From Paragordius varius (taxonomy: Eukaryota > Animalia > Nematomorpha): DNA of 64,000 bases. The notes beneath the pieces are model-generated. The model was not told the DNA's origin. It made no database searches and was given only the letters and a program-made list of their open reading frames with translations. This document shows positions 7,201 through 62,492 of this stretch, one piece after another; position 1 is the stretch's first letter; each line of letters opens with the position of its first letter. Made by a program: the position numbers and the translations under genes. Location: NCBI GenBank assembly GCA_964247055.1, contig OZ176052.1, positions 11,656,001 to 11,720,000 on the forward strand, in the 5' to 3' direction.

Positions 7201-10200
7201 ACTTTAAATTAAATATTTCAACTATTTTTTCTGCATTTTAGCCTGGTTTTTGGGATTTTAAAAGTTGTTCCGGTTGCAAAGCATGCAATTGTTCTATTGG
7301 TGCAGAAACTCCCCAATGTGATACACTTACTGGTCAATGTGCATGTAAGCCAGGTACCACGGGTAAATATTGCGAAAGGTGTCGCGATGGTTTTTGGAAT
7401 TATGGGCCAAACGGATGTCAACGTAATTTCTTTACAATTTATTTAATTCTTTGGAAAACTTTTTCGGTAATTTCATAAAGAATTCTATTTATGCATTTCT
7501 ACTAAAATATTCCGTTTTTAATAAAATAAATGTGGAAAACAAAGGGGTAAAATGTGTAAACTATCCCTTCAAGATTTTTGTAAAGAACCTTAACCTGTAA
7601 AAGACTGCCAACCACCATTTTATTAGTAATTATTTTTTATTAAGCCAAAACATATCATATAACACAGCTCCTCATTTATCAACCCTAAATGCATTGGCAA
7701 TATTAATTTTATAATATGGTTACTGTATAAGTTTTTTTATAAAAACTTAATTCATTGATTTCACGCCTTATTTTTTTTTTACTGCGAATTATAGCTTGTG
7801 CATGTGCCTCCCATGGTTCCATAGGAACACATTGTGATGCCAAAACAGGACAATGTAGTTGTCTCTTAGGCGTGACTGGTGATAAATGTGACCAGTGTAA
7901 ACCTCGACACATTTTGGCTCAAGGCAAGGGATGTCAACGTAAGTGTCATAAATAACTCTAATAATGATAAATTAGGTTATTAATATAAATTTGGAATATA
8001 TATATATATATAATATATGTATATGCCTTATTTACCTAATTTATTTAATAAAACATCATAAAATGGTAAATAAATGTTGCATTTAGTCAAATATTAAAGG
8101 AGTTGGGATCTAGAAGGATTGTTTTGGGCGAATAAAGATTCAACTAATCACTAACATTTTTATTTTATATTTTTTTAAAGGGTTCATTACTGCGTAATTT
8201 TACAACACTCTATTTTTTTAAATACCCAAAATTAGCTTGTGATAAATGTATCCATACACTGTTGGACGATGTTGATACGCAACAAAATTTATGGCAAAAT
8301 GTGAGTCACGTTATTCGTGATATTTCATCCGGCGTTTATAGTCGGAGACGCTTCAATGAAATCAATCAAACCATCGCAAATCTAGCACCATTGCTTGAAA
8401 GTGTTAGGAAATCCGCTAAAGATCCCCATGGAGGTGTAAGGTTTGAAATGGCCCCTATAAAAGACGCTTTGTTGGCTCTTGGTGTACAATCTCAATACAT
8501 TGAAACGAAATTGAATAATTTAGCCTTTGAAGCAAATATCAGTCATTCTGGTATGACCAATCTTACCAAAGATGTTGGTGATATGGCTAAAACTATCACT
8601 GCCCTCCATCGCACCATATATGGTAATTATATTAAGCTTTTCCATTTTTTTTAAATTAAATGTTTGAACATTATCATCTATTTTTAAAACTTTTGACCCT
8701 AACATACTGAAATAAGAAGAATCAGCACAAGCATAATCATAATTTTTATCTATATTTTTGTATCTAACCTAAATTTAATTAATAACTGCCAAATAAGGAA
8801 AAGGATGAGGCAATTTTACAAAGATAAGTTAAAAAAAAGATCTACTTGAATAATGGTATTTATGTTCTAATCGTTTCAAAAGGGTAAAAAATAAATTTTA
8901 ACGATTGCGAAAATTTACTGGTAATTTCAAATATAATATATAGAATGATTAGTCTAATTATTTTAAAGAAGTTTTTTATCGTGTTTGGTAATAGTCTCGC
9001 ATATATGCGTTTATATCACTACTTAAAATAATTAAATAAAATTTTTTATACAACATATGCAATAATTTAGACGTTATCACAAAGGCTCGACGAGTAGAAA
9101 ATGCTATAAAATCTGATAAAGTTCGAGAAAATAGAGATACACTCGTGGAACAAGCGCAAAGAATGTCCACTCTTCTCAATGATATGAGTTTTAATTCGAC
9201 CGAAGCACAAATACGGACTGATATGGAAGCTATTTATGAATGTAATTTATATCTTTGCGTTTTCCAAAAAATTGATTACTATTATTTGTATTATTCATAA
9301 CTTCTCTATTTTTTAGTATTATATCGGGCTCAATTCATGGAATTCGGTCCTAAACAAGTGCAAGAAACTATGACCTCTCTTGTGAAAGATTGTGACGCAC
9401 TCGTTGATAAATTACGGAATGTTCATAATTTTACGCGTCAAATATACTCTCATCTTGATCAAAATCAGAGACTGCTACAGCAAACTGATCCACTCACTGT
9501 TAAACAAATGATCTCAGACACACAAAGTCATAAAACAGAATTGGGCGATACGGTCCGTGGAGCACGAAGATTAATTGAAGAAACTAAAGGCGTATATATC
9601 AATGCCTCAAAGTATACAATTTTCCTCTAGTATTACCATTAAAACAGGGGAAAGTTATATTTTATAGCACCAGTAGTTTTAAACGGTTTTGAAAAGTGGT
9701 TTCAGAACCGCAGTTCAAAATCTTTATATCATAAAAACAAAGTTAACCTTATTTTTAATTTTTTTTATTTTATTAATAGAAGAATAATTGATAGGGGAAT
9801 TTGTCACTTTATAATGAAACCGAAATCCGAACCATTTGACCGAAAAATTGCGGGTTTCGAATTATAAGTTTGGTGACTTCAATTTACCGGAAACTCTATT
9901 GAATATAAAGCAATTGTTATTAAATTAACTATAATTTTAGTACATATTTGCCTTATTATACTTTATGATCTGGTTACAATCGCATAAATTAAATGTTATA
10001 AATTAATGTAGAAATATGCAACAACTCGAAATTACACTTGAAAGTACCAACACGCCACACCAAGCCTTGTTAAACTTTGTTACTACAAAAAATCCTGAAA
10101 CCTCCAAAAATGAAAATCAATTACCACTTCCAACTACTCTGATAGATTCTGTCCTTCAACATTCACAAATGTTAGAATCTCAATCTTATCATTTTCAGCT

Positions 10201-19575: not shown

Positions 19576-21322
19576 TCATCCGAAAACACCCCACGGAACA
19601 TGAAATAAGAACCCCTGAAAACATCGAGGAGTATCCATGAATTCGTTGGGTTTCGTTTTCATCCATGTAAATGGGCTTTGCATAGTTCTTTTCAAATACA
19701 AATGCGCGGGGGTCTCCTTCGTGGAACTGTGATGCGTGTTTCGGTAAGCCCATAAGATTTGGTTTAATGTTCGCACTGGGTCTGCGGAAAGTGGGGTTGA
19801 CATTGAATAATGATTTTTTAGAGTGTAAATTACCCTCTTTAACAACCCATTTGTTCGGGGGTGGTAGGGAGCTGATGTTACGTTTTTTATATTAGAGGAA
19901 GCTAAAGTTCTTTCGAACTCCCCCGATTCAAAATAAGAGCCGTTATCAGTAACCACCACTTTTGGGTACCCATACCGGCAAAAACAGGTTTCTAAAAACT
20001 TTAGAATATTACCTGTATTCACAGAGCGTAACGTCTCTACCTCCATCCAGCGGGTCCAATGATCAATTAGTACCACCTATAAATTGTCAATGGGTCCGGC
20101 GATATCTAGGTGGAGCCGTTCCCATATGGTTGTATTCCCGTTCCATTGATAGGTGGGATTTTCGGGTACATTTGGGCGCAGCCTTTGGCAGTTTTGGCAA
20201 CTACGCACCCATTTTTCGATATCTTGGCTCAACCCGGGCCATTAAACCTTTTCACGGCTTAATAGTTTCATGGCTTGTATTCCTGGATGGCCACTATGCA
20301 GGTATCTTAAAATCTCTGGCTTTCGGGATTATTACCCGATCTCCCACAAATAATAGACCGTATGCATCCTCAATTTCATTTTTTATTGCGATGAAAGGCT
20401 TGACCAGGGGGTCCGTCCAATTATTAGACCTTAGGGCTACTTTTAATTTTGCTATCGTAGGATCCTTTATAGACTCTTGATAGATAATTTCTCTATTTAA
20501 ATTTAATTCGTTGGACCAAATCAAATGAACATTGCTACTTTCATCGTCTTTCTCAAAAGCCATCGGCTCCTGGTTTTCAATGGGAAGTCTCGATAGGCAG
20601 TCAGCTATGTTTTCTGTACCAGGGTGATATTCTATGTTAAAATCGAATACCGATGTTCTAGTTATCCAGCGTACTAGTTTACAATTATTAACTTTATTTA
20701 GATCTCTTTGAGGCCCAAATAGTTTCACTAGAGGTTTGTGGTCCGTTTTTATTATAAATTTTCTGCCATACAAAAAGGTTTTTAACTTCTCTAACGCTAT
20801 TAGGATAGCTTTTGCTTCTCGCTCAATTACTGAATAGTTTTCTTCAGCCTGAGAGCATTTTTTTGACGTGTAGGCGATCAGGCGATTACCCGCTGTTGTT
20901 CTATGTGATAAAATAGCACCGTATCCTGACATTGACGTGTCGGTTTCCAAGACTATAGGTAGTTTGGGATTATACGGATGCAAGGAACTACTCTGGCAGA
21001 TCAAGTCTTTAGCTTTTTTGAATATCAAATCATGCGTTAGCGTCCAGCACCATTTTTGTTTGTTACCTGCTAATTTATGTAGTTCTCCCATTTAAATGCT
21101 TAGAGAAGGGATGAATTTTGCATGAAAATTAAGTAAACCCAAAAATGATCTAAGAGTGGTTTTGTTGGTCGGGGTCGGGCACTCTTGGATGGCTTTAATT
21201 TTATTTGGGGAGGGTTTAATGCAATTTTCAGAAATAATATGACCAAGATATTCCACAGATGGTTGAAAAAGTTTTATTTTATCTTTGCGCAATTTTAATC
21301 CCATTATCGACCGAGCCAGTTA
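19576..21322 (-). mobile_element. Decayed, 5'-truncated Ty3/Gypsy LTR-retrotransposon pol (RT C-terminus, RNase H, integrase)
   Basis: RT thumb (VEYLGHIIS...LRSFLGLLNF, 21092-21304); in-frame TAA at 21094-21092; RNase H (LETDTS...YSVIEREA...KTDHKPL...IADCLSRLP, 20294-21091); frameshift near 20310 into the HHCC finger (LHSGHPG...V*WPGL...CQNC, with a stop); rve core (VVTDNGSYF...PYHPRTNG, 19576-20076). Order RT-RH-IN is Gypsy. No gag, protease or YxDD segment. Confidence 0.93.
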
Positions 21323-26295: not shown

Positions 26296-29200
26296 TCATA
26301 TCAAAAATGCATCATAACTAGACGCTGCATATACATAATTTAAATCAAGGTTTGGAACCTGACCCTTACACATGCGGAACATATCCAAATAAAATTTGGC
26401 TTGAAGTTTATTTAGCATTATATCAATTATGGAATCTCTCTGATCAAATTCATCGTGTTTTATCAAATTTATAGTTAGTGCATTATCATAAGAAATGTAT
26501 GTTTCGGAATTAGTTTTGACATCATATGGTTTTTGGCAGATATTTTTATTATAGTTTACAGTATTATGTAGTATATTTTTGTTAAATTGCAAAAGCAATT
26601 CTATAAAAATAAGAGTTGCTATTCGACTGTTCAAAGCATATAAGGGAGCTAATGTGTGACCAATTTTATTTGCGACTATCATGCCATATCCTAAAATTTG
26701 GAAACTTTTAGTGGATGCCTGCTGATTATTAGAGGCGCAAACTAATGCAATATTCGATTTGGATTGTGGAGAATAAATCATTTCTTCGACATAAAATTTT
26801 CTGGAAATACCCCCATGAATATGGGTATCATAATCTAATAAGGTAGCTAATGGGATATTTCTGGCCAAAATTATGGAAAAATTGTTTTCAACCATGTTTT
26901 CACGGATTTGGCAAAGAGAAGTGATTGATTCTTCCAATATTTGTGCAAAGTTATGTATTATATAGTAAGAAACTATTTTCATTATACTCATAATTATACT
27001 TGTAAAATGGGGACCAGACATGCCTTTTTTCACGTACACTGGGATAGTGTCTTCCAAAGTATTTAGGCATATGCTTCGCATGGCGGCTTTTGTTTCCATC
27101 GCTTTGAATAGCAGAGATCCAATCCCTTGTGCCCTGAACGCTTTTTTTACATAAAACCAACCACAAGTCGAAAATTTGTCACCCAAGATCATGCAGTAAA
27201 TGATTCCTAAAACACAAATTATAAAATATATAAACAAAAGGACAATAAATATATTTGCGTCGCTGGGACTGGACAATTTATTTGGAAATTGGTAGTATAT
27301 TTGATTTGTAATTAATTCTAAGTAATCGGAAATAACTGTGAGTATTGTTAATAATTAACTTTTCTAAAAATGCTTTTTAGCGTTGTTTTTATATGGTAGC
27401 GTGTTTAACATAGAGTCGACCCTAACTATTGGCTAATTTAAAACAATCCCTGAACCAAATTTGCTATCAAATGGAAAATATTGAAATATTTTTATAATTT
27501 TGCTTCAAAGCCACTTAATTACTTGAAAATACATATTTTTCAGAAGGTTAAATTTTTGGTTGCTTTATATTTGGAATCCCTAAAATCACTATTGATTTTA
27601 CATAATTTAATAATTTGGGTGGAATAGATTTGTTTTCGGAACTTGTTTTTTAACAAAATATGTCATTAGGGCGGAAATGTATGAAGCTAAATATAGGCCC
27701 TTATATAAAAAAGTGGACTGACTATCGGAGCATTTGTGAAAAAGTAAATATAAATATTTATGAATTGATATGCGTTTTTAGTGCTGTTTGGATATTTTTT
27801 CTTGAGAAATAGCTGGGCATAAATAATTGAAAAAATATTCAAACATAAAAGATACGACTTTTTTGCTACCATTTATATTAGATATGACATTTATTCTATA
27901 TCTTTTTAATAAGACAGCAGACACAATATGATGTTTAACACTTGGATACAACACATTCATTTCGGTCCTCCGATTTAATTTGGGATCTTTGGGGACCCCG
28001 GGTTTGTTTAAAATCAAATATTTTTAAAAATATGGAACAAATTAAAGCCATTTCATGCACTCACATAACATTGAAGCACCAAAATATAACCAAAGATTCG
28101 TTTAACACTTTGATTCGAATTGGGTTATTAAAATACCCCTGAGTATGTCAAAGTTAATATTTTTAAGAAAACTACTAAAAAAACAGTCCCATTTTAAATT
28201 TATGCTTCTATCCTAATAAAAATCATATAAATAAGCCAAAATACCTAAATAAAATTAGTTTTAAAAAATATGACAATCTCGACATTTTTATTTTACAACA
28301 TTTTTGCAAAATATCGTATTTATTTAATAAAGCTAAAATTAAAACTAATTTTTTATATAAATCACATCTAAGATTGATAGAAATAGAGAAAGCCGTCTAT
28401 TTTGTATTGTCGAATTCAGCTAATGCACAGATGTCATTGTGACTAAATTTTTACCTTTGAGTTTTATATCAAAACTAGCGTAAATCTCATGCTGCTACGC
28501 AGCCCGAGGAAGTCCTTCGGACTTCTAGGGGGGATTTATTTTAAAGGGACAATAAATTGATCTACATATGTGGATTATTTCGAAACATTACTTAATAGCT
28601 ATGATCTCATAGGAATCTTAAAACGGTGCATTCATACTAATTTATTGTTTACTTGGGGAAAAATAGATTTAAAAAATTATTTTTGTGGACTTTGTTTTTT
28701 GAAAAAAATGGCATTTTACGGGGGTAGCGGGTAAAAAGAGGGCCTAAATCAAAAAAGTGAGTCGACTATGTTCAGCGCGATCAAAAATAAGTAAACAAAA
28801 ATCATATTTGAAATTAAATGGTCCAACACGTTCTCCAAAAAATTTACTTAACCCATTTTTCACACGAGGTGGGCCCGAACTGGGGACCTAATTCCAAAAA
28901 AGGGCGAAGCTATTGTCGGGACATTCATTAATGATTATATTTTTTCGATGTTTGGATTTGAATGGGTCTACCGGTTTTCCGGAAACAGATCACAAAGTTA
29001 CATGAGAAATCAGTTTTTCGCGGGTAGCTCCTTACCCAGCAGCTATCATCAAAGAAACGCTTGGCGAAACTTTTTGCCTTTTAACAGGGAATACGTGGAA
29101 TCCATATTTTTTACGGTCTCATACCTTGATCGAAAAATAGATTTAAAAAAATATTTTTGTGGACTTTGTTTTTTGAAAAAGGTGGCATTTTACGGGGGGA

Positions 29201-35618: not shown

Positions 35619-37259
35619 TTCAAAGAAGTTGGCCCTAAAGATAATTTAAGTAAAATTTTGTTTAAGCGCATCGTATGGTATGTTGTAAGCAATGCTGGAA
35701 TTCATACCACTAAAAATTTTCATTTCTTAAATTTATTTTTTAATATTGCTTGCCACCAATTATATTTTAAATACATTTTATGTTCAAAAACATAAAATTT
35801 AAATTATACAGTTAAATTTTTTTTAATCAAACATCTAAGCTTAGATATATCTTCATGGCGTTTAATGATATATTTTGGATAATAGCATTTTACATTAACA
35901 TTAACAGCATGCTTATGCTCCAACATTGCCAAAAATAATTGTAAGCAAGGTATTTGTTGATAGTATCCGCTTGATGTTATTTAGCACATTAGTATTTTTA
36001 GCGCACACTCTTTTAATTTTAAAAACATATACCTACATTAACAAATTTTAAAAGTGTGTAACTCTTAAAAAGTAGGGAAAATAAAAATCTAATTTTATTG
36101 CATACGCATTTAAGCTTAATTTTAAATATATTACAACGTTGTTTTTTCTTTAAGACATGAATGTATGTATAAACAAAATTATTGGAAGCAAAGCTTTTTT
36201 AATCAAAAATGTTAATTAAACATAATGGGTGCAATAATGCGATTTTTTATTTTAATAATTATATTAAGAGGATTATATCTTTCTTGGATAACTCCTAAGC
36301 CGTATATACCAAAAGCAACATGAGAATCCTGAAATAATAATATTCAATTGGATGTTTTACGAACTATTAGTTATTTGGAACTCAAAACCTTTCTGTGGTT
36401 AACAAAAAATTATAGGAACCTTTCGTAAAATTAATAATTCAGCATATCTATTCGTGTTTCATATTTTTAACATTTACTATTTTAAAAATTTACAATTATT
36501 TGGCACACAAATACTTAAGTTTATATTCAAATTCAATAACGAGTCAATGACATAACACGATAATTGGTAAACAAGCTAAATTTTTCGCAATATAGCCATA
36601 TTAATACCGATAAAGATATTATTTTAAACAACATAATATTAACTGAAGGCATGTAGAGGGGTTTTTGTGTTTATCTCAATTTACCATCCATTAGTTAATT
36701 AATAAACATTAAATTTAGCTTTGGATTTTTATTTTTAGTATTTGTTTTTTTTTAAATAAAAGAATAGACAAAGGTTTAATCATTGTACCTTTCCACATAA
36801 TAATAAATAGAATCCACCATAGCCAAAACTGTAAGTATTTCTAGCGTTATTTTTAGGGAGGAAAATAAAGCTTACACCATTTTTAACCATAAATGAGCCA
36901 ACAGAACTAATTTTAAAGTCAATCGATATCATCATGTCTAATTTTTTATTTTTAATACATATAAATGATTAAAATGTACATATATTCAATAAATAAATAG
37001 ATAACTATTTACAGGTATTCAAGATATTTGGAGGATTAATAAATAATATAATTATTATATATGTGTGTCTATATGATAATGTCAAATCACGGTCATCAAG
37101 AGTGCTTATGCGCAAACAAAACATATTTCAGGAGAATAATCAGATATTGATTCTTGAAAACAGTGGTATTATGCGTAAATATTTTTAAACCTGGACTACA
37201 ATTTACACGGCGCGTTATTTATGTGGTTTTCTATAAGCTAAATTTGTATAATTATTGTG

Positions 37260-40200
37260 TTAGGAAGATGCTTTGGAGTTATAACCTTCTTTCATGGTTT
37301 TTACAATGAAATCAAATGCTTTAGTATAAATGTTTTGGATGTTGTCGGTGTACCGGTCTTGTAAAGTTTCTTTAATTGCACTGAGGAACGGATCTCTGAG
37401 TTTCTATATAATAATATATATTTTATTTTAAAAAATTATAACTATGTTAATATATAAATCATTCATAAGACAAATTGATTTAGATTTCTTCCAGTTATCA
37501 CAACACCTACCTAGTCATTCCTAATACTTAATCAATAATATTTAAATTATTTGTATATCACCAACAAATTACTGATGATAAGTTTTTAATTTAAAATATG
37601 CTTGAATTTTAAATTAAATGAATGCTAAACACATGGCTAACATATGTACAAAGTTTTCCCGCTAGGCTAATATCTTTAAAAGCGGTCTCAAACACTGTTA
37701 AGATATTTATATCATGCGTATACCAAACTATATTGTGATTTATGTAGTGTAAAAATTAGTTTCTACCTACCTCATATACCTTTTACTATGATGATTTCAA
37801 GGTTAGATGCTGATCTAAGTCTGTTTAATTAATTATAATCCCATTAATGATACTAATATAAAAGTTTAATAATTTAATAATATTTATAAAACTGCACTAT
37901 TTGATCATTTAATTTGTGAAACACAATAATTTTAAAATAGTAATAAATAATTGTTATTTGCATTGGATTGGAAAAATATATTTATTGTTGTTCAATCATT
38001 GAGCTAAAACAGAAACAGTTTTGCATTTTCATTTTTACTAATGAAACAATTTATCCCACTTATGTATTAATTGTGTTCCTAACTAAATATTTTTAATCAA
38101 GTAGCTTTATTCAAAATCTAACAGTGGAGTTTGGTCTGATAGATAAAATGATAAACAATGGCGGCTTATAAAAATAACCGATAGATTTAAGCATATTTTT
38201 ATAGCGCAATATAAAATCAATTTATAACCGTAATAATTTTTAATGTAAAAAACCCAAATGTTATCTCTTGTATGGTTATTTATTTCATAAACACCAAAAA
38301 ACAAAATTCTTTGATTAATTCTGCTTTGTTTGTTTTATGAACTGTATTTTAAAATTGTGGTAAAAAGATGACTTTTGACGAAGGAATGCATTTTTAAGCC
38401 GCCAGATCGGTTACTATTTTTTAACCAGTCAAAAACCTAACCCTATTCAAGAGCAAATGTAGAAATCCATCAATTTATTATATTTAAAAGACAAAAATCA
38501 AATATCTCATCCTTTTTTCTTACATACAATCACCGCATAAAAGGGATTATAAAATTTTTTAAAACATATGAGATTTAAATTTTAATCCACTATGTTTGAC
38601 GCTAATTAGTATTCAATTTAAAATACATGTCATTTTTAAAATGCCATAAAATGGGATAGATTAGTTTCAGGGTCATAAAGAGCGTCCATAAAACGAACGA
38701 CAATTTGTTGGTAATTATCATTAAAAACATTTAAACTTTTTTCAAATATAATGCAAGTAATATAATTTTTTGTGTAAAATCAATTTATAAATTAAAAAAT
38801 AGTTAGAGCAGAGTGGAGATGTAAAGTTTCGGTGTTGCTTCAAAAGAATATTCTAACATTTTTATATTATTGTTATAGAACGAATTTGAAAAAGGCTATT
38901 TAAAACTTCTTTATAACTAGGTCCACAAAAATACTAAAGATAAGTGATAAGGGTCTTAAAATTTGTGAAATTGCATGTAAGCAAGTATAAATTTTGTTCA
39001 AACACTTTAATTTTTTTTCTTTTCATCCATTAAAAGACGTGTTTAACCAATTATATTGCTCTTTACTGTATCAATTACTTTCATATTAAATTTGAGTGGT
39101 CTGTTTAATGTGATTATTATTATAACATTAAGTATAGAGCTAACCACAGCCTATTGGATATATGTATTATTAATAACCATGACAATAAAACAACGCCTAG
39201 TTAAAATATATAAAAAAATTATTTCTGTAAAAACAAACCAACCCACTCTTTAAACAAAATTGTATGGAATGAAAAAAAGCCAAAACAATACTACACATCA
39301 TAAAGTCCAATAACAGGGAAAAAAATCAATATTCATATTCTTACATAATGGTATAACGTACAAAACGCTTCTATCTAGTGTTTGTGTAAGTGTATCGTGT
39401 GTAGTTAAACAATAATAAAAATCACTAAAACACGATGATTTATGGAATTCTCATATCTATCTCTCCAAAATTAATAAGTAAATAAAGGACAATTTGGTTA
39501 ATAATTTGAATGACAAAAAAAACAGTTTAAAAATCTATTTTCCCGTTTTATTTTTCTAACTAAGTAAACCACATGGCCCTTTAATAAAATTTCCTTCTTT
39601 TTTTGCTCATAAATTTTGATTTTGGTACAACATAAATATATGAATTGATCGGGATATAATATTAAACACTTATTGATGAGATGTAGACTCATAAATATAA
39701 ATTTATATACATTCGCATGTGTGTGTGTGCCTTAAAGGTAAATTTTGAGCCTAAGCCAATAGATAGTAGAGTATAGTATCGATAGCTGGCAACCAAAACT
39801 TACTGTCTTTTAACAGTTTTTCATTACATGATGGTATTTTGTACAAATAAACTATCTATATATTATTATATACCAATATAATATTTATGATAATCGAGTT
39901 GTTGACACATATATATGCCATAACTATTAATGAAATGATACAACCTCTCCAGAGATAAAATAAAATGATAGATTTAAGACAAATCATTTTAAAGAGAGGA
40001 GAAACAAAACTTGGCTACTGTTAGCTTTTTCCTATTATATACGATAAAATCATTCGAAAAAAATTAATAAGAAAGAGAGTTTTACATACATCAAAGTAGG
40101 AAGGATCAAAGTTTTTGAAGTTTCTATACGAATTTCCCAGGGCATAAAGGAAGTCCCTGAACTTGTCGTAATCCTCTAAGAGTGTGAAAGATTTTGTAAA

Positions 40201-41003
40201 GCCTGTCATTATGGATTCTGAGGTGGCTTCGATTGCATTGTCTTTGTCTTCGGGTTTTACATTTTGCATGATAATTTCCCGATATTCAGGGTTTTGTTCC
40301 AATAATCTATAAATGTATATGGGACAGTTGATTGATTCAATTAACGCGTTTCTCAAAAAAAAACTTTTCATTGTAAAATTTATCGTAATTTATGTGCATA
40401 AATTTTGATAAAATAAAATATAAATTGGTTTTGCATACCCCCGGTTTACACCTATAATAATTATTACTCTTAAGGCAAGCAATTGCATCGATAAATTTTA
40501 AAAATATTTGTGGAACCGAATTTTGGAGCATGTTTTATTTGGAAAGTCAACCAATTTGTGGCGCCCTTAAGTTAAGTAGCATGTAAAAAACGCCTTTAAA
40601 TAAAAAAGAAGATGCCATTTGATTTTAACTCTAAGGTGTGATATTTAGTATCGCTTCTCCTAATCAAATACTAGGTTTCCTAAAAAATGCAATTATCAGC
40701 GGAAAAAGTTATAAAATCAAAATAATCAAAACTTAAAAAAAACAGAAAAACTTACTTATTCATCATAAATGTGCCAGTTTGTTCCAAATCACGCGTGACA
40801 CCCTTCCAAGATTTGCCTGCCAGGAATATTTCTCGTCTGGTTAAAGGAACTCTCGGGTCATTCATGGGCGGTTTATCGTACATATCGGTGGCTGCTTGGC
40901 CATTGTCCCCCTTCTGTCCTCCACCTGCTCCTCCTGTTTTGTCGGTTTTTCGGGCTGTGCCATTTTGGTTATCGTTAGCGGTATTACTTGAAACACAACC
41001 CAT
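37260..41003 (-). CDS. N-terminally acylated globin (invertebrate neuroglobin-like / globin X-like), 202 aa, with atypical heme pocket
   Basis: Exons 41003-40756, 40306-40090 and 37403-37260 (609 nt, open). MGCVSS start. Family motifs DPRVPLTRREIF...SWKGVTRDLEQTG and YFD|KLRDPFLSAIKETLQDRYT...IY. Introns fall at the canonical globin positions B12.2 and G7.0. Confidence 0.9.
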
Positions 41004-41940
41004 ATAATACAATGTAATTCGGTGAATGATAGATTATAGATAAATGGCGATAATCAGAGAAAAAGAGGAATCATACAATTATTATCATGTTCTCAATTTC
41101 AATCATAGCGATAATGAATTTTTTGTGGTGCATTTCAATGATAGTTTGTAACTCTTCTTCTTTAGATATGTGGAATTTTAGTATCACGGCTCATTTCTCC
41201 ATAGGCATATACGCATAAAACAATAAATGTAATTATTACGATTTTTTATTTAGTATTTATTTATTGATGTATAAAAAAATCTGATAATAATTATTGTAAT
41301 AGCGTTAATATATTTATATTTAGAGGCTTACAAATCAAAGCTGCAGGCATACAATAATACTCTTTTATCTAATGTAAAAATACGTTTTGGTATGGAAAAA
41401 AAGTAAAAAAAATAATCAATGGATTCAATATATAATATTAACAGTAATATAACAAACAATAAACGTAAAATATAGATAGATATTATAACGTTACTTCAAT
41501 ATTATTGCTTGTTTATACGCTAGGAAATTAAACAGCATTCTTTTCTTCTCCTCCTCCACTCCCACCTATTAACCAGCTCTGGAGCAGTGATGCGCGTAAA
41601 ATATATATTTATTGATTTGTGAAGTGAACATCAGAAAAGAATTGTTATATAATACAAAATCTGACAAAGAGTCACCTTATTTCATTGATAAAAGAGGGGA
41701 TATAAACAACTTAAGTTAAAATTAATAATATAAGTAATTAAAAACGTTTATTTGGATGTAATCAAATATAAATAAAAAAAAACTTATAAAACGGTCATTT
41801 TGAAAAAAAATAGGCTGCCTTAATATTAATATGTTATTTATTTATTCATAACCTTATATGTGTACTACTGGGAAGAATTGAAGCAGACCTAACATTTTTG
41901 CGTTAAAATATGGATAAATTTACTATGCAGCTGTTTTTGT

Positions 41941-44900
41941 ATGGCTTATGAAAATAATTTGCAGAATACGGAAGGTTTCAAGATAAATGATTGTTTAGCG
42001 GACAAGTATCCTTATATAAATTATCAAAACCATAATCCTTATTTTACTGAAACATTGCAATCAAAATTTTCCGACAGTTCAGGCGGGCCATTTTATGAAA
42101 GCATTTATGATAAACATACTAAAAGTTTTGATAATCTACTCACAACATCTACTTATGTTAATTCTGATATATTGAATAAATCAACTGATTTTGAATCGAA
42201 ACATATCACTTCGGCTAATAGGTCATCATTGCGCAAATATTTGAATAAGAATTTGGGTATCGGAAACAAAACTCATGTAAATAATCGAACCAAGGATTTT
42301 GGGGATGTTAATAATTTTTTACACAGCAGTCCAAATAGTAAAAAGAATTTTTTGTTATGCTCAAGTATTCGATCGCACCCATCTTTAACAGATTATTTTA
42401 CTAAAACACCATCCCATATTTATACCAATGATAGTTGTCGCAACAAAAAATATAATAGCCATATACCATTGCGACATGTTGGCAGCTCATTTGATTTTTC
42501 CTCAGAAAACAATCAAATGAACCATCATGTTCATTCATCATCAAAGTTTTGGCCGTTTTCATGTAAGGCAAAAACGGATGCATTAAAGTTAAACGTTAGC
42601 AATAATAACAATGTTGCTACTAATTGTTATAAATACCATTTTTCTACGCGCGGATCCAAGGTTGCAGATACTAAAACTTTGTTTAACAACCATGTTAAAA
42701 GTAAAAACAATTATAATCATACAACCAGTAATATGAATGTTGGAGAGGCCACCAGTATTCGTCATATAAGATCCTGTTCGGCCGACAATGTGAACGCAAT
42801 AAATAATGAAATCTGCTCCCTTCCACCACCTCTCCTTATCAAAAATAATAATAGAAACATTAAATCAGAAAAGCCGTTGTATGAAAATACCAAGTTAATA
42901 GAAGGAGAATCAGACGATTTGACATCAAGTGACAAGGAGCTTAAACAACAAAAGAAAGATAATTATGCAATGATGGATCCGCTTTTGATCCAAATGTTTT
43001 GCATGCCATATGGTTTTTCCCATTTGGATATCCAAAGTGTTCAAGCTTCATATAATCTCATATACAAAGCCTTACAAGCTAAATACAATCAACATCAAAA
43101 ACAGCTCCAAGATAATCCTACCGGAAGAAAATCGATTCCGTCGAATGAAGATGGGAGCAATCCAGAATGCGGGTCACTAATTACTCAATCTCTTCCACCT
43201 GTAGCTAATTTTTTGCGAAAAGGAAACAATATTTTATCACGGCTACCGTTTAAATCAAGTTCGTCTGCTCAACAACCTAACGTTGTTTCTGCGCCAAACC
43301 CAAGCACCATCCTCAATAATAATAGTTGTGGTACAGATGCTTTTCCTTCCGCTGTACATGGTTCCTATATAGCCCATCAAATGAATAATGCGAAACGTAA
43401 TCAACATTCTCCCATTTCCTGTAAAACATCAACTCTTGAACCGACGGGTGCATCAGCTGCTTTGGTTGCTGATCACCTGTTTTCACAAGAGTTGAGTAGT
43501 AACAATGTTTCGCACCATCCAATGTATAAGGATGAACATCAGGGGTATGATGAGTTCAATAAACCTAAATATCCAATAAACTTAAATGATCTTCCTCATG
43601 CTTTTCCCTTGAGGTGTGGAAATGAACGAGCCTCCTCATTTTCTTTAAGCTCAACGGTCAAAACAAAATTCCATGGATCTACCGCTATAACGGGTCAACC
43701 CCTTTTCACTCAAGAACATTCAAACAATGCTAGTACCACTAGTTCTATATCTAACCTCCAGCATTTATCCCTAAAAAAGAAACCACTTGAATCAGCACTG
43801 ACGGTAAACGCCGCTACTTTTTATGGCTTGGACCAAGGCGATGGAATCTCCAATGAATTAGTTGAGAGTTGCGCTTACTTCCGAAATGAGATAGGAACAA
43901 CCATACATGGAGTTACAGCTAACAGCCCATATTTTCTTAGCAGTTCTTCTATCGCCGATAATAGTAGTACCAAAAATATAAAGTCTGAAATTTGTCAAGC
44001 TTCAAAAGATGACAAAAAATTGGCCAAACCCACCACAATAAATACTTTACCGTTCCCAAGTGTTGTGTGTAATTCAGTTTCCCTCCTGGATTATAGCATA
44101 ACACATTATCATTTCCTTAAACAACACGACCATGACCCATCATCCCCCAAAGTTGGGTGGAAACAACAATTATCTGTACACAACTCGAATTACAAATTGG
44201 AACATTTGGACCCCGGGGCATTTTTTTACCGCTCTTGTTTTGTCGGGAAAGGTATATAAATTAATAATTTTTTTAACACTGATATTACAGTAAAAATTAA
44301 AAGATAAGGCTTAATTTATTTATTAAAAGTGATGGTCAAAACTTTATTATTGCAATAATATGGTTTTTGAATTCGTAAAATCAACCATGGTTTAATTCTA
44401 TCTATCCGCGATTTATTTAAAAGTTTTCTATGGATTTTTTGAACATATCTAGGAACCCTATTATGTTGACTATAAAGAAAAAATTAGGATATGAAACCAT
44501 GGTTCTCTTATATATTGAAATTTTTCATTTTTTAGCATTAAATAAATTATACGCCTTAAATATTGATGATTGTATACATATTTTATATTTATAGAGCATT
44601 ACAATTTTTTCGGTGTTGATGAACATATTGGTCATGTTGCAATAAGTCTCAAGTATGAAAATGGCCATCTGAACTCCACATCTGACACAGATTTTAATAT
44701 TGAACCCCATGTCAAAATTATTATAAGAACATCTCAGGTTAGGTTTTTATCCTATAATATATTGTCATTTATGCAACCTTTTTATATACATGCATAATGT
44801 TAGGTTATTTAATATTTTTATGAACTTTCTAGACACACCGTTTCTACATAATAATTTATTCATGAAAATCACATGAAATTTATCATTTTCTTATTGATAA

Positions 44901-47056: not shown

Positions 47057-47128
<72 letters not shown>

Positions 47129-50100
47129 AATATAGCCGATGCAACTGGTTTATATTCCCTTTACACTACGTTTAATCCTAACCCTAACCATCACCACCAT
47201 GGTTTAACCAATAAAATTAATACCAATCCACCAGTCACAACACAAAATATTGATACTACCCATCTACCATCTCATGAAAATAATACTTTTGCACCAAACA
47301 CTAGCGCAAAAATGCAAAATTCTCCCTCCTTTTTACCCAATAAAAATAGTACTGAAAATTTGTCCGATTCGGAAAGCCAAAAAGATGAAACTGATGAAAT
47401 AATCCAAATTATGTTTCATGTTTCAACTTGGCTCCCTCATGTCCCCAATCATAAACAGCAACTGTTAAGGAAACGACACATTGGAAATGATATAGTCACC
47501 ATCATTTTCCAAGATCCGTATTTAGAAGATTTTAATGCCACTACTTGGCTAAGCCAAACACATCACACTTCAAACATGAAAAAATTAAATTTTAATAATG
47601 AAAATTCTCCTTTAGTTTCTCAAAAATTATCTACCGCTTGTACTGAAAAACTAAAAACTCCCCTGGCTTTTAGTGCAAAACGTCTCCGATCTCATTACCA
47701 ACATGTATTTATCATAGTCAGACCAATAATAGTACAACAGCTACAAAATGGCTCAACTACCTCACAATATTCTTACAAGTATTACTAATTAATTAGTTGA
47801 AATTATTTTAATTCAGGAATAATAATACATGACTTTTCGATTACCACTAGTGTCTTTGTCGAATGTAAAAATAAACCAAAAATAAAGATATTTTACAAAA
47901 TATCAATTAGTCAATCTATAACCGGAACCGTTTTTAGTACCGGTTTCGATTATAGGCAATTATATTTAAAAATATTTTAGGGAAAATTATAATTTCAAAA
48001 ATGCCAAAAAAGTTTGGTTATGGTTTCCAATTGTTTTTGGTTAAATGGTTTCTATTGGGTTTATATTTTTTATATATTTAGATAACTTATTATAAAATCT
48101 AAAGATATAAACTGCAAAAAATTAATGTATGTATGTGGCTTTCATAGAAATCTACTCTATTATAATAAAAAAATCATATTAAACGATGTTGATAAACACA
48201 ATTCCGGCTCTATAAACGGTTTTTAACCGTTTTTGAGATTCGTTTGGAAACCGTTTTTTTAAAATATTAATTATAATTTTTACCTGTTTTTTGTTTGTAA
48301 ATTATGCAGATATATTATATACTATTTACAGTTCAAATTCACCCTTGAAAAATTTAAATTTACCCTCGAACAATTTAAATTCACCCTAAAAATAAATTAT
48401 GTGTTTTTGAACTTATGTAACTCATTATTAATATTTTTATGGCATAGTTTATTATTTTTTCAGTATTAAATTAATTTAAAACAAAATTTTTATTTTTTTA
48501 AAATATATAAAAATATAGGTAATTTTAATCTCAAGAAACATACATTTTATTTGAGGGTGAATATGAATTGTTCGAGGGCGAATTTGAATTGTTTTAGGGT
48601 GAAGTTGAATTGTTTAAAGGTAATTTGAATTGTAAATGGTGTATATGGTCAATATTTTATTAATTTATTTGTGTTTTAAAACAAATACTTATAATACAGA
48701 GTTGCAATCTCGAGATCCAAAAATCTTGAATTTTTTGGGCCCATTTTACCGAACGATGGCGTGTTCCATGACCCTACACACCTACGCGATTTTCTACTAA
48801 CTAAATGTAAATAATACATTTTTTTTAGCAAAATTATTGGAAATATTATTTGAAAAACTCTATCAGAATATTTTTCGATTCCAAGTACAGATATGGGTTA
48901 ACTTTTTTCCTAATTCGTCCTATATTTTTAAATAAGATATTATATATAAGGGAAAGACATATTAACATACAATTAAATATCTCTATTCCTGTTTGCAAAG
49001 CGAATAAATAGTAATAAAATATTTTTATCAAATAAAATTTCAACATTTTTTCATCCCCCGAAAAAAGGTATCAATGGTGTTAATGCCACAGCAAAATCAC
49101 CCAAATTTGCTAATATGGCCCTTCGAGCCAAACAAACTTGCCTCAAAGATTTATACAATTCTTATGGTTTGGCAAGAGATCATCCTTCAACTGATCCCTT
49201 ACTGCTTCCATTGAATACAAAAATGCCAAATAATACATTACCCTCATCAAATTATTATAATGAAAATGCAAATAGCAGCTTAAATAGGGTCCCTTGGTTA
49301 ACTTCTGAAGTTAATTCTGTTAGTTCAGACCTAATATATCCATATTATCTCCAAAATTATTCCTTTAATACGATTCCACCATATAATCATGTGTGCAGTA
49401 CATCAAACATTGCTTCAACCGCAAGCTCAAACATCAAAGTCCTATGTAAGTTTTGTGCCTATATATTCTTTATAAATGGGTATATTAAATTTATAAGCGA
49501 TGAATCTTGTAGGAGTAATCACCGTTTCCAGTTTGAATATTTGAGGTGGAGAGTTATGATATATGTTGCAACAAAGCCTTTAATAAATCTAAATCTTTTT
49601 ATCTGTGTCATAAAAAAATTTAGGTTAATTTTTATGGATCAAATAAAAGTTATTAACTCTATTATACCTTTTTCCGTTGACATAAAACAATTTTCACTCA
49701 TACATAATAACTGTAAAATGTTTTCTTTACCCATATTCATAATTTCATGCATGGTAGCTAAAATTTCACAATTGGGTTCAGCCGCTTTTTCTTTCCTTAA
49801 GAAACGAAGTCACGAATCTTTGGGCACAATTGCGACAAATGATGATATATGTAGTTCAACACAACAACATAATCATTTTATGACATCAGGAGGATTTTTT
49901 CATAAACAACTAGAAAAGAATTCTGATGTTGAGAATAAATACGTTCAACGATATAAATGGACTAACGCTTTAACTGAAACCAATAATAAACATTTAATGA
50001 CCAAAATTTATGATAACATTACGGGTGGGTGTTTTTGGCCCTTGTCTCACTTGCATTCATTTGCTCAAACTGAACAGTAATACTTTATAAATATATACAA

Positions 50101-60648: not shown

Positions 60649-62492
60649 ATGGTTAAAACACAGGCAAGTTCTCGAAAAAACCAAGAATTTTGGGGGAAGA
60701 AGTCAAGCATCTATTATAATTCCGATGTTACAGGAAATAAATCAAAAATAAAGAAAGATGAAATTCGAGAAGTAATATTTTTTATTTAGGCTTATAATAC
60801 ACGTTTTTGGTGTATTCGAATATATTATATTTGGCCATTACTAATTTTAAAACCTTAAAAATCTTAGATTCTGGAATTGGAAGAGAAGGAAGCGATTGAA
60901 TTGCAAAACATGATGTTACAAGATCTTAAAGATGAAGATTTTACTCTAAATGAATTCAAAGTATAAATTTAATCAATTGAATATTATTATTAATTAGAGA
61001 AAAATAACTATTTTCAGATATTATAGTTCTTTTACATATTAAAAAAATACACTAAAAATTTAGTTTAAGGCATGTAGATATTTTTGAAACAAAAAAAATT
61101 TATTAAAAATTTGGTTCATAAAATTACTTTTAGGGCCGCGGTTTGAGTATCACTAGTATAGACTTTCAAAACTGTGTTGAAAAAATATAAACTAGCCGTA
61201 TAAATAAATTTTAATTTTCATCGTTAATATTACTTTTATATAAAACGCTGACATTTATCCTTTTAAATGATTTTGTTAGACTATAAGATATCTTGATTTC
61301 CCATTGTATAAGTGCAAATATGTTAAAAGGAAAACCTTCAGTTTTTAGCATAAAAAATTAAAATTTTCCCCATAGGCGGAATTATCAAACTATATTCATA
61401 AAAACTTTTACAACAGTTATTATTTTATTATTTATAAAAAAATATATTTAGGAAAATGCTTTCCAAAAAGATATTCCAACGCCCTCACACTTTCCGACAG
61501 AAAACCCAACCCATAATGACAAATTAAAATTATCAAAACTGTTAAAACGTGAATGTCCGGAATTTGTTGAATGGTCTGAAGCTATTACCACCCAAATTGT
61601 CCCCAGATTAAATATGATTCATAACATTTTGTTTCATTTTCAACATTATTCATTTGCTTTGACAAAGTTATCATCGGTTAGTATGCATCCTCTTTTAAGC
61701 GAATCGTTTGCCAAAATTAATCCACGCATAATTGACACTCTTTCTCAAACAAGAGATGTAATGGCCCTTTTCATGATTAACTTTAATTTTTATCTCACTC
61801 ATAAATGCAGTGGGAATGGCCTACTGTCTCAGGATAAATCCGTTCTTCAACACCCAGTGTATGCCAAACTAAAAAAATTGCACGCCATATTAACCCGGCT
61901 TCAGGCCACGATATCGGACCAAATTTGGGACACTTTACTACCTCGTTTACATGCTAAGCTTTGGATAAATCAGGCTTCACTGAATCAATTTTATCGGCAA
62001 AATAAGATTAAAATGTTGCCTTTGACGTCCATTGTTAAAAACACCACATCATTACCATCGCCAACAATACACTTCCCAGCAGAAAGTCAAAAACTTACTG
62101 AATCAGTAGATTTAAATTCTACCAAACTCTCACCCTCATTCATCGAGGAAAATATATCTATTGGCAAGCAAAAACATCACACCTCAAAATCTAAGGTAAA
62201 CAAAACCACACTTAAAAGTTCCCTAGAAACGGACGAACATAATGTCAATGTCAATGATGATGGTGATGATAAAAGACCCATAAATTATGAAATGTTAAAG
62301 AATAAAGGACTTACGCCTAAACGGAAAAAAGAATACAAGAATCCACGGGTCAAACACCGTGTAAGATTTGCTAAAGCGCTTAAAAAACGACGTAGTCAAG
62401 GCCCTTTACCGCCTAAAAGTATACCTAAACAGGGGATAACACGTGTATCTGGCATCAAAATTAATCTTAAAAAGAGCGTTAAAATAAAATAA
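60649..62492 (+). CDS. UTP3: Sas10/Utp3 small-subunit processome protein
   Basis: Exons 60649-60771 (FWGKKSSIYYNSD), 60868-60960 (EEKEAIELQ...EDF) and 61452-62492 (LLKRECPEF; QHPVYAKL; C-terminal Sas10 domain RPINYEMLKNKGLTPKRKKEYKNPRVKHR...SGIK...KSVKIK*). Confidence 0.92.

Follow-up and report, generated by a model that had tools for sequence, protein, structure and literature searches.

A histidine-free globin gene of the nematomorph Paragordius varius with a predicted lipid anchor and a remodelled heme-pocket exon

The globin X-type proteins GbX and GbXL are conserved across animals, are expressed in nervous tissue and are too scarce to carry oxygen. In a 64,000 nt stretch of the genome of the nematomorph Paragordius varius (GenBank assembly GCA_964247055.1, contig OZ176052.1, positions 11,656,001–11,720,000, forward strand; the whole stretch is referred to as the window), a gene found at 37260–41003 on the minus strand is predicted to encode a protein of this kind that lacks histidine altogether. 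GbX and GbXL are N-myristoylated and palmitoylated metazoan membrane globins (PMC7457136; PMC3176823). An intron at E10.2 marks GbX and its absence separates GbXL, and in the arthropod members of both groups Phe CD1, His E7 and His F8 are highly conserved (PMC7457136). The window protein shares with arthropod GbXL the Met-Gly-Cys (MGC) motif and N-terminal extension, a length of about 200 aa (the GbXL mean is 199 aa) and, by modelling, the 3-on-3 fold, and as in GbXL the only introns are at B12.2 and G7.0. Unlike GbX and GbXL, the window protein has replaced His E7, His F8 and most probably Phe CD1 and has no histidine, and its likeness to them is one of motif, length, introns and predicted fold. 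Searches of open-access papers and preprints turned up neither a GbX-like acylated globin that lacks the triad nor any treatment of nematomorph globins.

The best solved relative, both by sequence and by fold, is Kumaglobin, a hexacoordinated heme protein of the tardigrade Ramazzottius varieornatus (PDB 5ziq and 5zm9; Kim et al. 2019, as cited in PMC12403961). The two proteins have the pre-A/A motif DPRxPLT...KSWK in common. Kumaglobin binds heme and, unlike the window protein, has His F8, and the similarity drops sharply over the central exon. The rotifer-type globins (P0005, P0006, P0008 and others) share SWKG..R..EETG, DRYTD...NIY and KTMKEGYNS with the window protein but, unlike it, most of them keep His E7, His F8 and Phe CD1.

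Globins lacking His F8 are known from crustacean HbL and from arthropod androglobin domains, and bacteria have non-heme globin folds. Tyr is found at F8 in HbL C, E, F and K of Daphnia pulex, and Puriana HbL2 has Met CD1, Val E7 and Val F8; none of these crustacean proteins with an altered triad has been characterised biochemically (PMC7457136). They are, like the window protein, natural invertebrate globins without His F8, and in Puriana HbL2 all three sites are changed, but they are members of the fast-evolving HbL class, whereas GbX and GbXL are acylated and conservative. The non-heme globin folds include the N-domain of Bacillus RsbR, the sporulation-inhibitor sensors of Bacillus anthracis, photoglobins and degenerate arthropod androglobin domains (PMC7475203, PMC8717448, PMC7457136). 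What these would have in common with the window protein is a globin fold without a heme ligand; some have fatty acids or other molecules as ligands. They differ from it in being bacterial sensors or embedded domains rather than acylated single-domain animal globins. Proteins of the RsbR or pXO1-118 type were absent among the 39 PDB sequence matches and the top fold matches listed, all of which were heme globins.

The gene is made up of three exons, all on the minus strand, with a product of 202 aa (82+1+72+47). Exon 1 (40756–41003, 248 nt) opens with the ATG start and encodes Met-Gly-Cys, a disordered Gly/Asn-rich linker of about 40 aa, pre-A, helix A and helix B as far as B12. It ends at a GTAAGT donor in phase 2, which is the B12.2 intron position, and is followed by an intron of 449 nt (40307–40755, GT..AG). 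Exon 2 (40090–40306, 217 nt, acceptor ATAG, donor GTATGT) is the central heme-pocket exon and covers the end of helix B, helix C, a shortened CD/D region, helices E and F, FG and G1–G6. It ends in phase 0 at the G7.0 intron (37404–40089, 2686 nt, GT..AG). Exon 3 (37260–37403) encodes helix G from G7 and helix H, with a TAA stop at 37262–37260. No intron is present at E10.2 and none of the three exons encodes a histidine. Only short chance open reading frames (ORFs) were found on the opposite strand of the gene region, and no Rfam family or tandem repeat was detected in 36500–42000, intron 2 included.

The N-terminus reads MGCVSSN, of which the MGCVSS part matches the PROSITE-type N-myristoylation pattern G-{EDRKHPFYW}-x(2)-[STAGCN]-{P}. 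From this motif Gly2 and Cys3 (codons at 40995–41000) are predicted to be N-myristoylated and S-palmitoylated, respectively, and Cys3 is the sole cysteine of the product. The same MGC start is found in the Gordionus orthologue described below and in the rotifer-type relatives. An initial reading of the locus from its sequence alone (the sequence-only reading) had proposed an intact 202 aa frame with B12.2 and G7.0 introns and an MGC start, and each of these was borne out by the gene model and the motif check.

An exhaustive HMMER search of 1.84 billion representatives with exon 2 returned a single strong match (E 1.9e-22, 64% identity). This was a 200 aa 'uncharacterized protein' (XP_065320826.1, CAK9301320.1; P0001) of the horsehair worm Gordionus sp. 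m RMFG-2023. Searches with the window sequence were made exon by exon, and the Gordionus protein was used as a proxy wherever a full-length protein was needed. Exons 1, 2 and 3 matched it at E values of 5.5e-24, 2e-28 and 1e-22 and with amino acid identities of 65, 64 and 87%, and 31 residues of exon 1, from YDKPP to GVTR, are identical in the two proteins. A word-indexed homologue search with the ORF around exon 2 gave no match, owing to the small number of 5-mers common to the family and to a length limit that it hardly meets. The Gordionus locus (L001) has the same layout, with a phase-2 intron inside the Lys codon that follows ..MIN and a phase-0 intron after YFE, and its product keeps Ile, Thr and Tyr at the positions corresponding to CD1, E7 and F8. 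A tblastx comparison of the Gordionus locus with the window showed the three exons only, and the RasGEF neighbour of the Gordionus gene has no counterpart here. There is no local synteny and the orthology therefore rests on the gene itself.

When codon alignments were made for each exon and the counts summed, the proportion of nonsynonymous differences (pN) was 0.197 (dN 0.23), against a proportion of synonymous differences (pS) of 0.85, meaning that synonymous sites are saturated. The Tyr codon is TAT here and TAC in Gordionus, and the Thr codon is ACC here and ACA in Gordionus. Because pN is this low against a saturated pS, and because both residues have been kept through synonymous codon changes, the gene is, by codon comparison, under purifying selection and not decaying. 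The sequence-only reading had argued against decay, and this view was upheld by the codon comparison and by the finding of an orthologue in another genus. The contrary explanation, that the gene is a relic, either a silent or a decaying globin copy whose frame is intact by chance, would fit with the loss of the heme ligands and with the only RNA-labelled run examined, X8 (29 million letters), which gave nothing for the gene. However, both genera have kept an intact reading frame and intact splice sites while their introns and flanking regions can no longer be aligned (no similarity was detected outside the exons by tblastx), and the pN of 0.20 against saturated synonymous sites and the 31-residue identical stretch also speak against a relic. 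Its probability is very small.

The helix register could be determined independently of any alignment, because the two introns serve as anchors. The split codon at B12 lies 6 residues before Pro C2, E7 lies 32 before F8, and F8 lies 13 before G7, with which exon 3 begins. For comparison, human beta-globin has its proximal ligand at His92 and an intron after codon 104, and E7 and F8 are 32 residues apart in neuroglobin and cytoglobin; the spacings in the window protein are canonical in this respect. In this register F8 is the Tyr of LGNSY (TAT, 40126–40128), 13 residues before the G7.0 intron, and E7 is the Thr of EATS (ACC, 40222–40224). When the Gordionus protein was aligned with Kumaglobin (5ziq, E 1.7e-18) the Tyr fell on the His of VGRQH, and in the alignment with cytoglobin (6q6p, E 2.5e-6) His E7 was paired with the latter of the two Thr residues in CTTA. 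BLAST against a metagenomic relative that retains the histidines (P0004) and the family-profile alignment likewise placed the Tyr on His F8 and the Thr on His E7. As no exon encodes a histidine, a His at F8 or E7 is impossible under any alignment. The Thr E7 and Tyr F8 assignments made in the sequence-only reading were thus confirmed, by the intron anchors as well as by the alignments.

The third assignment made there, Ile at CD1, is less certain. The second Ile of EII (ATC, 40270–40272) lies at Pro C2 plus 6, the expected CD1 position, and is also placed there in some alignments. The assignment depends on where gaps are placed; the region between C2 and the E helix is four residues shorter than in the family. 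One MAFFT run paired the family Phe with the Phe or Tyr of PEF/PEY (C2+2); in the profile alignment this Phe fell in a gap. Phe CD1 has most probably been lost in the window protein. In the nematomorph protein Ile, Leu or Met stands where the family has Phe B10 and Phe B14, Phe CD4 has probably been lost too, and the F helix has become rich in aromatic residues.

An artefact, whether from an error in sequencing or assembly or from an alignment in the wrong register, is the least probable of the explanations considered. The window protein has no histidine anywhere, the Gordionus protein shows Tyr, Thr and Ile at the corresponding positions, and the intron anchors fix the register. In addition, a contig of 350 nt recovered from run X1 (40043–40392) was identical to the window, Tyr codon included, except for a T>C difference at 40258 that is synonymous in a Val codon, although X1 is possibly the assembly's own sample and so not independent. 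A contig from a second sample, X4, spans the Tyr codon with six differences at unlisted positions, and in X3 the depth at this codon was zero.

The globin identity of the protein was clear from several sources. Pfam Globin (PF00042) matched the Gordionus protein at 24.8 bits (cut-off 22, E 3.3e-5) and exon 2 of the window alone weakly, at 13.1 bits (E 0.14), and the best PDB match of the Gordionus protein was Kumaglobin 5ziq (E 1.7e-18). Exon 1 alone also matched 5ziq, at E 0.0014, and exons 1 and 3 matched it collinearly. All 20 of the 20 language-model neighbours of exon 2 were globin clusters. An AlphaFold2 (AF2) model was built for the orthologue from Gordionus (multiple sequence alignment A4), not for the window protein. 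In it helices A to H occupied residues 49–189 with a predicted local distance difference test (pLDDT) score above 90, and the N-terminal 40 residues were disordered. The model superimposed on Kumaglobin 5zm9 with a VIA Z of 22, a root-mean-square deviation of 1.9 Å over 145 residues and a Foldseek TM score of 0.87, followed by Glycera hemoglobin, cytoglobin and neuroglobin, and the top 50 matches were all globins. The predicted fold is the 3-on-3 globin fold. A search of the PDB with exon 2 alone gave chance matches only (a DNA primase and TPR proteins).

A profile search seeded with the Gordionus protein and the metagenomic relative recovered 25 proteins, which were rotifer-type globins and included proteins of Brachionus calyciflorus (P0012) and Brachionus plicatilis (P0017). 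These globins start with MGCASSN followed by a Gly-rich linker, and His E7, His F8 and Phe CD1 are all retained in the consensus. The nearest His-bearing kin found for the nematomorph protein are the MGC-acylated rotifer-type globins and tardigrade Kumaglobin, and from these comparisons the window gene is identified as the nematomorph orthologue of N-acylated, globin-X-like membrane globins.

When the proteins were divided into segments 1, 2 and 3, equivalent to the three exons, and scored against a profile of the His-bearing family, the window protein scored 42, 1.3 and 54 bits, respectively, and the Gordionus protein 36, 2.6 and 49 bits. The leave-one-out controls scored 81–93, 120–125 and 78–80 bits, values that are inflated because the profile is dominated by close rotifer-type sequences. 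On these scores the central exon, normally the best conserved, has lost almost all family signal, while the flanking exons keep about half. The remodelling is, as far as the comparison of residues and scores can tell, confined to the heme-pocket exon, and the lipid-anchor motif, pre-A/A and G/H stay typical of the family. The sequence-only reading had described three concerted pocket changes in an otherwise conserved gene. That description did not hold, given central-exon scores of 1.3–2.6 bits against 120–125 bits in the controls and the disappearance of Phe B10, Phe B14 and probably Phe CD4.

The two Brachionus proteins are also without His F8. Ungapped BLAST alignments showed Phe F8, Tyr E7 and Tyr CD1 in the Brachionus plicatilis protein and Gln F8 and Tyr CD1 in that of Brachionus calyciflorus. 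Both keep the anchor, pre-A/A and G/H motifs, and they are annotated as 'neuroglobin-like' or globin-domain proteins. Against a profile built without Brachionus they scored 60–61, 69–71 and 69–76 bits for the three segments, so they keep a central segment typical of the family (about 70 bits compared with 1–3 bits in the nematomorphs). The proximal ligand has, by these alignments, been lost at least twice in this acylated family, the loss in Brachionus being independent. As the Brachionus copies have kept the same surfaces without His F8, members of the family can evidently persist without a proximal ligand.

Introns of such length (up to 2.7 kb in the window gene and 22.7 kb in its Gordionus orthologue) might harbour a mutually exclusive central exon encoding histidine, in which case the Tyr form would be only one isoform. 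Stop-to-stop pieces of at least 20 aa from window positions 36000–42000 and from positions 9000–35500 of the Gordionus locus were searched with the family profile and by tblastn, and no such exon was found. Only exons 1 and 3 were recovered, together with weak collinear matches on the known exon 2. A hidden exon is even less probable than a relic gene.

In the absence of histidine, the His–Fe bond of working globins cannot form. The sequence comparisons thus point to a protein in which classical His ligation is impossible and which is nevertheless under selection. The sequence-only reading had offered both a heme-free scaffold and a membrane sensor with tyrosinate-ligated heme or a bound lipid. 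The explanation that we prefer, and to which we give about an even chance, is a heme-free membrane-tethered protein with a globin fold. The protein would no more carry out gas or redox chemistry on heme. It would remain tethered to the membrane and act via the surfaces that are conserved across phyla, namely pre-A/A and G/H, and the rebuilt pocket would be free of heme and either closed up or occupied by a hydrophobic ligand such as a lipid. Three points underlie the preference: the pocket has been extensively remodelled, its aromatic clamp is gone, and Brachionus offers a precedent.

Several observations weigh against this explanation. On the proximal side, Leu F4, Ser F7, a basic FG3, Phe FG5, Tyr G4, Phe G5 and Leu G8 are canonical in both genera. 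On the distal side the residues at E7, E10 and E14 are small (Thr, Ser and Gly, respectively), and helices E and F are free of indels. Together these features are compatible with a pocket that is still open and of heme size. Tyr at the ligand position is, moreover, the one replacement known to keep heme, as seen in human Hb M. The fit of the model to known globins is of little help here, as AF2 models look like holo-globins whatever the heme occupancy. The inflation of the control scores and the empty RNA-labelled run, both described above, also count on this side.

The alternative that follows from these observations is a natural globin of the Hb M type, in which the phenolate of Tyr F8 would be the axial ligand and the iron would be locked in the ferric state. 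We regard this as possible but the less probable of the two. Its role would be in peroxide, anion or nitric oxide chemistry, or in hemin storage or handover, and not in O2 binding, a proposal that is just as tentative. Tyr is found exactly at F8 in both genera and has been kept through synonymous change, it stands in a conserved Ser-Tyr-Arg context, the remaining contacts on the proximal side and in the G helix are canonical, and FG3 is basic (His or Lys). The E7–F8 and F8–G7 spacings are also unchanged and the distal residues are small. Hb M Iwate and Hb M Hyde Park, in which the same replacement of His F8 by Tyr has occurred, hold heme on Tyr F8, and the TAT codon of the window gene is one transition away from CAT. 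The Hb M proteins are pathological point mutants with an otherwise intact pocket in which ferric heme is kept on Tyr; here, in contrast, the change is fixed and selected and is accompanied by wholesale remodelling of the pocket. Tyr F8 recurs in the four Daphnia HbL proteins listed above (PMC7457136). However, the Phe residues that clamp the heme are gone from B10 and B14, most probably from CD1 and probably from CD4, the CD region is shortened, and the near-total loss of family signal in the central exon goes far beyond what a ligand swap needs. One Tyr shared by two sequences that are 64% identical is also weak evidence, and the presence of Phe or Gln at F8 in the two Brachionus proteins shows that a missing ligand is tolerated in the family.

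A doubly lipid-anchored protein that would carry ferric heme on the F8 tyrosinate in the manner of catalase, with small polar distal residues, is less likely than not. If true, it would provide an insect-dwelling parasite with a membrane heme centre that reacts with peroxide or anions, or with a protein that stores or transfers hemin, and tyrosinate ligation would for the first time have been characterised in a natural metazoan globin. It would also be a natural counterpart of the Hb M disease variants.

In this lineage, the anchor, pre-A/A and G/H have stayed nearly unchanged while the heme-pocket exon has been rebuilt and every histidine lost. If these proteins are heme-free, as we prefer for the window protein, part of the conserved function of the family would be independent of heme chemistry and might, for example, depend on a surface that binds partners at the membrane. 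The gene would then be a natural separation-of-function variant that makes a non-heme role directly testable. Under either explanation, caution is called for in labelling such genes as 'neuroglobin-like' oxygen binders.

Some further features of the relatives were observed. Intron sizes are reversed between the two nematomorph genes, with intron 1 measuring 449 nt here and 22.7 kb in Gordionus (L001 10231–32980), and intron 2 measuring 2.7 kb here and 0.6 kb in Gordionus (L001 33200–33823). The annotated Gordionus protein has a short fourth exon that adds the tail RSHLGSS (L001 33940–34244). Without the splice to this exon, Gordionus exon 3 continues to a TAA directly behind ..EGYNSST, near the end point of the window protein. 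Either an artefact or an alternative 3' end may account for the annotated tail. The annotation of the Gordionus assembly, which has a GC content of 26.9%, made use of RNA-seq (10.1101/2023.06.26.546503); the GC content of the window is about 29%. The metagenomic protein P0004, the closest relative that bears histidines, is encoded on a contig of 3303 nt (JGI sample 3300059473). Its N-terminal 35 residues resemble a translated intron or flank, and as a single ORF covers helices E to H the gene appears to be without the G7.0 intron.

In run X1, a second haplotype was present at about half depth across 37100–41200, with many single-nucleotide polymorphisms and indels in both introns. Among the exon contigs listed for this run there were no variants except the synonymous difference at 40258, which was at full depth. 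In X4, which is another sample, the alternative alleles of the introns were at full depth. Together these observations point to high heterozygosity and strong constraint on the exons.

The gene stands head-to-head with an uninterrupted ORF of 772 aa (41941–44259, plus strand), the start codons being about 940 nt apart. The predicted product of this ORF is Asn/Ser-rich and had no match in Pfam and PDB sequence searches. Long exons or ORFs elsewhere in the window encode a GNAT acetyltransferase domain (26299–27276, minus strand), a Rap/Ran-GAP domain (47126–47785, plus strand) and a Sas10 C-terminal domain (61614–62489, plus strand). Local synteny is not conserved, as these neighbours differ from the RasGEF neighbour in Gordionus. 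An ORF at 20297–21091 on the minus strand contains the RT_RNaseH domains of a long terminal repeat (LTR) retrotransposon polymerase (E 6e-27) and is probably a fragment of a retroelement.

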